DNA of 37,332 bases from Octopus bimaculoides (lineage: Eukaryota). Of this stretch, positions 13,890 to 15,016 are shown one piece after another (position 1 is the stretch's first letter; each line of letters opens with the position of its first letter). Below the pieces are notes generated by a model. It searched no databases. It was not told the origin of the DNA and saw nothing but the letters and a program-made list of their open reading frames with translations. Position numbers and translations under genes: made by a program. Location of the stretch: the NCBI RefSeq assembly GCF_001194135.2, contig NC_068986.1:13192847-13230178 (forward strand). The letters are read 5' to 3'.

Positions 13890-15016
13890 TTAATATTCGT
13901 CACCTTCTTCCTCTTCTACTTCTGTAGAATCGATTCCAACTTCTTCATAATCTTTCTCAAGAGCTGCCAAATCTTCACGGGCTTCCGAGAATTCACCTTC
14001 TTCCATACCCTCTCCCACATACCAATGAACGAAAGCACGTTTGGTATACATTAGATCAAATTTATGATCAAGACGAGCCCATGCTTCGGCAATGGCAGTG
14101 GTATTGCTCAGCATGCACACAGCACGCTGGACACTGGCCAGATCACCTCCAGGAATAGTGGTCGGAGGCTGGTAGTTTATGCCAACTTTAAAGCCAGTGG
14201 GGCACCAGTCAACAAACTGAATACTGCGTTTGGTTTTGATCGTAGCAATAGCAGCATTGACATCTTTTGGAACGACATCACCCCTGTACAGCATACAGCA
14301 GGCCATATATTTACCATGGCATGGATCGCATTTGACCATCTGGTTATATGGCTCAAAGCAAGCGTTGGTCACTTCTGCCACGGTTAGTTGTTCATGATAG
14401 GCTTTCTCTGTGGAAATGATTGGAGAATAAGTAGCCAAAGGAAAATGGATTCTTGGGTAAGGTACCAAGTTGGTCTGAAATTCAGTCAGATCAACATTAA
14501 GGGCACCATCGAAACGCAGAGAAGCAGTGATAGAGCTGACCACCTGGGCAATAAGTCGATTCAGATTGGTGTATGTAGGATGGACAATGTCAAGATTCCT
14601 GTTACAGATGTCATAAATAGCTTCATTATCAACCATGAATGCACAGTCAGAATGCTCTAGTGTGGTGTGGGTGGTAAGAATAGAATTGTAAGGTTCCACA
14701 ACAGCAGTTGCCATTTGGGGAGCAGGATAAATAGAGAATTCCAGTTTGGATTTCTTACCATAGTCAACACTTAGACGTTCCATGAGCAGAGATGTGAAGC
14801 CAGAACCAGTTCCACCACCAAAACTGTGGAAGATTAAAAAGCCTTGCAAACCAGTACATTGGTCAGCAAGTTTTCGGATCCTGTCCAAAACCAAATCAAC
14901 AATTTCTTTACCAATAGTATAATGACCTCTGGCATAATTGTTAGCAGCATCTTCTTTGCCAGTTATCAGCTGCTCAGGGTGGAACAGGCTGCTGTATGAC
15001 CCCATACGAACTTCAT
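13890..15016 (-). CDS. TUBA: Alpha-tubulin 1, exon 3 (D76 to C-terminal ...[10 protein letters not shown])
   Basis: Contains [28 protein letters not shown] and [16 protein letters not shown]. The AG acceptor at 15017-15018 is phase 1, matching exon 2. Confidence 0.98.

Follow-up and report, generated by a model that had tools for sequence, protein, structure and literature searches.

Two tandem alpha-tubulin genes in Octopus bimaculoides

The window analysed here is a stretch of 37,332 nt from Octopus bimaculoides (contig NC_068986.1 of assembly GCF_001194135.2, positions 13,192,847 to 13,230,178) that holds two tandem alpha-tubulin genes on the minus strand, gene A, a divergent conserved isotype, and the canonical gene B. 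Comparing the two genes with their orthologues in Octopus vulgaris and Octopus sinensis, we conclude that codons 87-213 of the last exon, a patch of 381 nt, have very probably been homogenised between A and B by non-allelic (interlocus) gene conversion. Gene B is the upstream gene, separated by ~5.6 kb from the first exon of gene A; the two copies are offset by 19,959 nt, and reading frames and splice sites are intact in both. Products of both genes carry precomputed Pfam matches to the Tubulin GTPase and Tubulin_C domains (PF00091 and PF03953).

Splicing of the gene A parts listed in Table 1, with a phase 1 intron after codon 75, gives a product of 450 aa that is exactly XP_014788503.1 ("tubulin alpha-3 chain isoform X1", Octopus bimaculoides), a record placed on chromosome CM046606.1 of GCA_001194135.2. 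Exact database look-ups of the products of single open reading frames gave no match, and protein searches with the tubulin exons, which ran against representatives of clusters at 90% identity, gave no match above 95% identity. Copy B is 95% identical to an Enteroctopus alpha-tubulin. Its upstream exons were found neither in the window nor within 10 kb beyond its last exon, and an N gap of 3,468 nt (L002, 4219-7686) lies 2.3-5.8 kb upstream of that exon, where exons 1-2 would be expected. The model of gene B deposited for O. bimaculoides, truncated by this assembly gap, is a single-exon fragment of 390 aa whose start lies inside the intron at window position 35018; at the orthologous place in O. 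vulgaris and O. sinensis a full gene of 451 aa is annotated. All comparisons of A with B below cover the last exon, from codon 76 onward. When the window is compared with itself, the two loci align in this exon and nowhere else; the remaining matches are all interspersed repeats, and the introns and untranslated regions (UTRs) of A and B do not align with each other.

Table 1. Features of the window. Positions count from the first nucleotide of the window.
Feature	Position	Strand	Remarks
Gene A, last exon	13890..15016	-	codons 76-450 and stop; phase-1 acceptor ...tttttacag/AT at 15016/15017
Gene A, exon 2	19277..19499	-	codons 2-75 and first base of codon 76
Gene A, exon 1, coding part	28249..28251	-	ATG alone, then GTAAGC donor
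Gene B, last exon	33846..34975	-	codons 76-451 and stop; acceptor ...cttccag/AT at 34975/34976
Copy A, tract	14715..14984	-	270 nt identical, codons F87-Q176
Copy B, tract	34674..34943	-	270 nt identical
Copy A, 5' flank	14985..15016	-	first 32 exonic nt (codons 76-86), 14 differences from B; A-specific M80, S82, S84, S85
Copy B, 5' flank	34944..34975	-	first 32 exonic nt, diverged; canonical RTG(I/T)YRQ
Copy A, 3' extension of patch	14604..14714	-	codons 177-213; 3 differences from B, including fixed M177/V177 at 14714
Copy B, 3' extension of patch	34563..34673	-	codons 177-213
Copy A, 3' part, putatively unconverted	13890..14603	-	codon 214 to stop; groups by paralogue across species; 65 deep A/B changes
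CCDC32-family gene	3644-3797, 5385-5698	+	two exons, 155 aa; XP_014788502.1; tail to tail with gene A
Repeat family 1	11548-11728, 12738-12907, 17871-18051, 23135-23308, 32935-33078		
Repeat family 2	15962-16168, 18607-18808, 30084-30276, 7847-7988, 25629-25736		
N runs (six)	414-604, 2044-2636, 5048-5057, 12217-12226, 24361-25303, 26449-26832		

A 270-nt tract without silent differences

The two copies match at 270 of 270 positions over the tract, which is the longest exact run between them, and identity falls away on both sides. Toward the 3' end the adjoining 111 nt, the extension, contain three mismatches (14714, 14688 and 14679), and the 675 nt from 13929 to 14603 contain 80 (88.1% identity). 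Toward the 5' end the border is abrupt, the few exonic codons before the tract being strongly diverged, and past the splice acceptors the introns are unalignable. A preliminary description of this DNA, made from the O. bimaculoides sequence alone, had reported two tubulin paralogues separated by about 20 kb with a block identical at all 270 bases, 3 mismatches in the adjacent 111 nt, roughly 80 in about 675 nt (~88%) and a sharp 5' border at L86, and each of these observations is borne out, the paralogues being alpha-tubulins and the hand counts agreeing exactly with ours.

Nei-Gojobori estimates for A against B in O. bimaculoides follow the same mosaic. In codons 76-86 the proportion of synonymous differences (pS) is 0.79 and nonsynonymous divergence (dN) is 0.42; in codons 87-176 there are 0 differences at 61.3 synonymous sites; synonymous divergence (dS) is 0.085 in codons 177-213; and from codon 214 to the end dS is 0.64 and dN 0.04. 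Given the pS of 0.43 of codons 214 to the end, the chance of finding no silent difference at the 61.3 synonymous sites of the tract is ~1e-15, and permuting silent-difference states among degenerate codons gave a run this long with P<=1e-5, 1.6e-4 and 1e-5 in the three species, the first value being that of O. bimaculoides. The missing silent differences thus exceed what protein constraint explains, as the same description had argued.

The same mosaic in two other octopus species

Relatives were reached through the neighbouring CCDC32 gene and then through the A protein carrying T400A. With this one replacement the O. bimaculoides A protein is exactly CAI9724358.1 of O. vulgaris and XP_029637262.1 of O. 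sinensis. The O. vulgaris locus found through CCDC32 covers only the last 341 nt of the tubulin exon, with 1 amino-acid difference from A there; the orthologous A/B pairs were taken from two loci of 38-39 kb without N gaps (L005 of O. sinensis and L006 of O. vulgaris), each of which holds the complete A gene and the last exon of the upstream 451-aa tubulin gene, the B orthologue. No tubulin gene was called within 10 kb of CCDC32 in Argonauta hians, in agreement with tblastn, or, by gene calls without tblastn, in Acanthosepion pharaonis.

The full window is colinear with the O. vulgaris locus at 80-93% identity, introns of both genes included, and orthologous introns are 85-91% identical. Colinearity of both genes, introns included, between O. 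vulgaris and O. bimaculoides means that the genes were duplicated before these species split, and the duplication is much older than that split, given that the introns and UTRs of A and B are unalignable and that dS between them is 0.5-0.64 outside the patch. O. bimaculoides diverged from O. vulgaris and O. sinensis ~34 million years (My) ago, and the latter two split ~2.5 My ago (PMC10700109).

The comparison of orthologous pairs, which the preliminary description had proposed, recovered the same mosaic in O. vulgaris and O. sinensis (Table 2). All 13 sites fixed between A and B in codons 76-86 are conserved in the three species, and the borders of the patch are the same in all of them, with the last fixed difference before it in codon 86 and the fixed M/V site at codon 177. 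Within codons 177-213 dS between A and B is 0.30 in both O. vulgaris and O. sinensis, and from codon 214 to the stop it is 0.50-0.64, as against 0.14-0.21 between orthologues. Since the patch is present in all three species, the near-identity of A and B is neither an artefact of the O. bimaculoides assembly nor private to that lineage.

Table 2. Nucleotide differences along the last exon, between paralogues within each species and between orthologues of O. bimaculoides and O. vulgaris.
Codons	Length (nt)	A vs B, O. bimaculoides	A vs B, O. vulgaris	A vs B, O. sinensis	Orthologues, A	Orthologues, B
76-86	33	14	13	13	0	1
87-176	270	0	2	1	3	1
177-213	111	3	7	7	6	5
214-441	684	82	73	70	19	30

Probable gene conversion between A and B

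Evidence independent of the substitution rate comes from a test in which parsimony changes on the deep branch separating A from B were set against changes after speciation on the paralogue tree. Deep and post-speciation changes number 78 and 54 in the flanks, 0 and 5 in the tract (Fisher P=0.013 against the flanks) and 1 and 11 in the extension (P=0.0012), so that codons 87-213 combined stand at 1:16 (P=3e-5). Together with the normal or high rate at which codons 177-213 evolve between orthologues, this test implies that an old A/B divergence has been erased from codons 87-213, and such a pattern is what gene conversion produces and constraint does not. Four-point sums agree, with paralogue grouping overwhelmingly favoured in the flanks (52 against 195 and 203) and a star-like relationship, weakly favouring species grouping, in codons 87-213 (12 against 15 and 15). 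The perfect block of 270 nt would then be the 5' part of a 381-nt converted patch, and the A and B patch sequences would last have had a common ancestor at about the time of the species split or later.

Paralogues that are more alike within a species than orthologues are between species form a hallmark of concerted evolution (PMC2720389). Over codons 87-213 this holds for O. bimaculoides alone, where A and B differ at 3 sites and orthologues at 9 and 6, and informative sites in the patch split 2:1:1.

Several observations weigh against conversion, and we set them out together. In O. vulgaris the paralogues are no closer than the orthologues over the patch (9 differences against 9 and 6). A GENECONV analysis, also among the proposals of the preliminary description, was run as a GENECONV-style test in our own implementation (six sequences, conditioned on polymorphic sites) and found no significant fragment in the tract (P=0.16, 0.29 and 0.03), the longest runs falling outside it; the tract has only 3 polymorphic sites among the six sequences, which accounts for this outcome, and the power of the test is low at the present sampling. 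The G+C content of third codon positions (GC3) is not raised in the patch (0.33 as against 0.38-0.40), being 0.31-0.33 in the tract and 0.32-0.40 in the 3' part, and so bears no signature of GC-biased conversion. Sites with a species-specific state common to both paralogues are not enriched in the patch (2 in 381 nt, as against 4 in 711 nt of the 3' part). Divergence between orthologues is also ~5 times lower in the tract than in the remainder of the exon, as constraint at the nucleotide level would give, and the O. vulgaris and O. sinensis assemblies are short-read polished, which may have erased a few paralogue-specific variants.

Timing of the proposed homogenisation

The preliminary description had proposed recent non-allelic gene conversion. 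Conversion remains the best explanation by the rate-independent test, both for the tract and for codons 87-213, whereas its recency is not supported, the patch and its borders being common to lineages that split ~34 My ago. Because the patch is shared by the three species, homogenisation is either old or recurrent, if not both. Over the patch, A and B of O. vulgaris are roughly as far apart as orthologues are, and those of O. bimaculoides are closer together. The last homogenisation therefore falls at about the split, and a few sites hint at later events.

Among these, alignment sites 78 and 336 show a species-specific state common to both paralogues, site 360 has in both O. bimaculoides copies a state unseen in the other two species, and site 219 is T in both O. 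sinensis copies and in O. vulgaris A, not in O. vulgaris B. Some conversion has thus probably continued after speciation, for which the evidence is only suggestive, such sites being no commoner per nucleotide than in the 3' part.

A possible, though less than probable, version of this history is the one first put forward, in which a single recent conversion confined to the O. bimaculoides lineage produced the 270-nt identity. O. bimaculoides has no difference in the tract and 3 in codons 87-213, as against 9 in O. vulgaris, 8 in O. sinensis and 9 and 6 between orthologues; three or fewer differences where 7.5 are expected have a Poisson probability of ~0.06, computed by hand from the counts in codons 87-213, and sites 336 and 360 carry a state shared by both O. 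bimaculoides copies and unseen in the other species. Such a private event is, however, not needed when a patch with identical borders exists in two other species. The tract gains only 1-3 changes between orthologues over ~34 My, and at this rate its lack of differences in O. bimaculoides has a Poisson probability of ~0.14 (by hand) even if the last event took place at the split. Because the tract evolves so slowly, its perfect identity does not date the event, and the last conversion could fall anywhere in the past ~34 My.

Two further observations concern the diverged 3' part. Two of its four sites with a species-specific state common to both paralogues, window positions 14364 and 14370 (alignment sites 654 and 648) with the matching B sites, lie 6 nt apart, and either parallel mutation or a very short tract of conversion could have produced them. 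Changes found only in O. bimaculoides A number 11 in this part of the exon, as against 2 found only in the A genes of O. vulgaris and O. sinensis.

Slow evolution of the tract and the alternative of constraint

Between O. bimaculoides and O. vulgaris the orthologue dS is 0.016-0.051 in the tract, as against 0.14-0.30 across the remaining exon (Fisher P=1.2e-4). Concerted evolution by itself does not predict this roughly 5-fold lower synonymous rate in codons 87-176, and the perfect identity of A and B partly reflects an unusually low substitution rate there. Evaluating the tract for possible causes, we found no unusual structure in RNA folding (z=-0.37) and no relevant partner in a search for inverted repeats, and its synonymous sites are saturated against the alpha-tubulin of the bivalve Solemya. 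CpG density is 0.74 per 100 nt in the tract as against 2.7-2.9 in the 3' part, but the fast-evolving adjacent 111 nt have none, so CpG does not track the rate. These four checks leave the slow tract unaccounted for; candidate causes are constraint tied to coleoid RNA editing (PMC5705066), a regulatory element in the exon, additional paralogues acting as donors, and chance.

Slow evolution raises the alternative that there was no conversion at all, and that codons 87-176, or 87-213, have stayed undiverged since the old duplication because they form a mutational cold spot or because purifying selection acts on their nucleotide sequence with extreme strength. The very low orthologue dS of the tract fits this view, as do its low CpG density, its mere 3 polymorphic sites among the six sequences with a Sawyer-type test that is not significant, and the raised conservation reported in coleoids around conserved adenosine-to-inosine (A-to-I) editing sites (PMC5705066). 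We nevertheless consider it very improbable, because deep and post-speciation changes, whose ratio is independent of rate, stand at 0:5 (tract) and 1:16 (codons 87-213) while the flanks have 78:54, and because codons 177-213 evolve between orthologues at a normal or high rate (dS 0.23-0.30) and yet show almost no deep A/B differences. A border at which divergence jumps within a few bases to 14 differences in 33 nt, saturation against the bivalve gene, and a tract that lacks both unusual RNA structure and inverted repeats likewise speak against constraint as the whole explanation.

Gene conversion and constraint may also act together. It is conceivable, though improbable, that both isotypes carry in the tract a functional element at the nucleotide level, for example a regulatory element of the exon or sequence required for coleoid-specific A-to-I editing of alpha-tubulin mRNA, and that conversion keeps this element identical. 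If so, it would account for the ~5-fold slower synonymous sites of the tract over ~34 My.

The alternative of an assembly artefact, and two rejected explanations

The main alternative named in the preliminary description was a collapse of the assembly consensus. On this reading the identity is unreal, the two copies having been collapsed or cross-filled when the O. bimaculoides short reads were assembled. The six N runs of the window mark it as a short-read draft scaffold; they are mostly flanked by (CA)n or (TA)n microsatellites and account for very low G+C values in the composition profile. The assembly comprises 713,915 contigs, and that of O. vulgaris was built from Nanopore long reads with short-read polishing (PMC10700109). 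An artefact gains some credence from this gap-rich scaffold, from the 3.5-kb gap where the upstream exons of gene B belong, and from the length of the exact repeat, which at 270 nt exceeds the short reads so that internal variants could merge, but it is extremely improbable as the cause, because two independent gap-free assemblies, one of them from Nanopore reads, show the near-identity (1-2 differences) with the same borders, because each O. bimaculoides copy continues into its own strongly diverged flanks within a contig of 10 kb or more, and because collapse or cross-polishing acts only on sequences that are already near-identical and cannot start from ~12% divergence. What the short-read draft could have smoothed away are very few true differences inside the O. 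bimaculoides tract, perhaps the last one or two.

Two other candidates were rejected. A single unequal crossover does not fit a patch with two borders, and a young duplication with replaced flanks does not fit A/B introns that are unalignable while orthologous introns are 85-91% identical.

Isotype-specific residues and the borders of the patch

The products of A and B differ at 21 amino acids, all outside codons 86-176, and within codons 87-213 the one difference is M/V177. A-specific substitutions include T80M, T82S, R84S, Q85S, V177M, R214N, E220V, R221H, A278T, A299Y and R308C; they are the same in the three species and hit positions that are near-invariant in alpha-tubulins. Over ~34 My only 1 of the 450 residues of the A protein has come to differ between species, at a dN/dS of ~0.01, and with its substitutions kept in three species A is therefore a conserved specialised isotype rather than a decaying copy.

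In the standard tubulin nomenclature, the patch holds what we take to be the T3 and T4 nucleotide-binding loops, and the flanks presumably hold the H2-S3 loop (residues 80-85), the start of H7, residues 214-225, the M-loop (residue 278) and the C-terminal tail. The earlier contrast between a homogenised nucleotide-binding core and a distinct remainder is upheld on this assignment, with the isotype-specific residues outside the core. Conversion tracts reaching codons 80-85 or extending past codon 214 would overwrite residues that define the isotypes, and purifying selection may have purged them. Alternatively, a high local density of mismatches may hinder the extension of heteroduplex. Either selection or mismatch density would account for the same borders in three species, and these data do not discriminate between the two; the conserved borders and the placement of A-specific residues are what suggest a role for selection.

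One residue of gene B in this region stands apart. At window position 34958 (codon 82) O. bimaculoides B has I82 (ATC), whereas O. vulgaris and O. sinensis B, like almost all alpha-tubulins, have T82 (ACC); the difference is due either to a replacement in this lineage at a conserved site or to a wrong base in the draft.

Comparison with other gene pairs

Mosaic concerted evolution by gene conversion over >100 My has been described for the tandem gamma-tubulin pair TUBG1/TUBG2 (McGrath et al. 2009, PMC2720389), which resembles the octopus pair in being a tandem pair of the tubulin superfamily in direct orientation, tens of kb apart, whose duplication is much older than the species compared and in which part of the gene is homogenised while the rest groups by paralogue. 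In TUBG1/TUBG2, however, the converted regions span several exons and introns, paralogues resemble each other within species clearly more than orthologues do between species, the GENECONV test is significant and GC content is elevated, whereas the octopus patch covers 381 nt within one exon, does not involve introns, displays the within-species hallmark weakly and has no raised GC3. Apparent gene conversion has been known since 1985 for chicken beta-tubulin genes (Sullivan, Lau & Cleveland 1985, Mol Cell Biol 5:2454; as cited in PMC2114543), and beta-tubulin paralogues of Leishmania evolve in concert (PMC1533823). Coding sequence is homogenised and flanking or regulatory sequence distinct in these genes as in the octopus pair. 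They belong to another tubulin class and to other organisms, and their whole coding regions are reported to be homogenised to give identical isotypes, in contrast to octopus products that differ at 21 residues.

Partial gene conversion bounded by selection occurs in other duplicated genes, for example globin and opsin pairs, where it is tolerated in stretches in which the paralogues are equivalent and absent at paralogue-specific residues. For the octopus pair, selection as the setter of borders is, by comparison, only inferred.

The process is well known for tubulins and many other families, and the octopus pair is a clean but ordinary further example. What it provides is a cross-species case of partial concerted evolution in a cephalopod tubulin pair, in which the nucleotide-binding core is shared and the residues that define the isotypes are protected. 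Trees or dS calculated from the last exon would mislead on the age of the duplication, and short reads and transcript quantification cannot separate A from B over ~380 nt.

Neighbouring features

Beyond the tubulin genes, the window holds the CCDC32-family gene listed in Table 1, whose homologues in O. vulgaris and O. sinensis are 99% identical to it, those of Argonauta hians and Acanthosepion pharaonis 70% and 56%. An ARAGORN tRNA scan of the two repeat families found no tRNA-like head. These are short interspersed repeats of ~130-210 nt, 80-95% alike, which lie in both orientations in introns and intergenic DNA.

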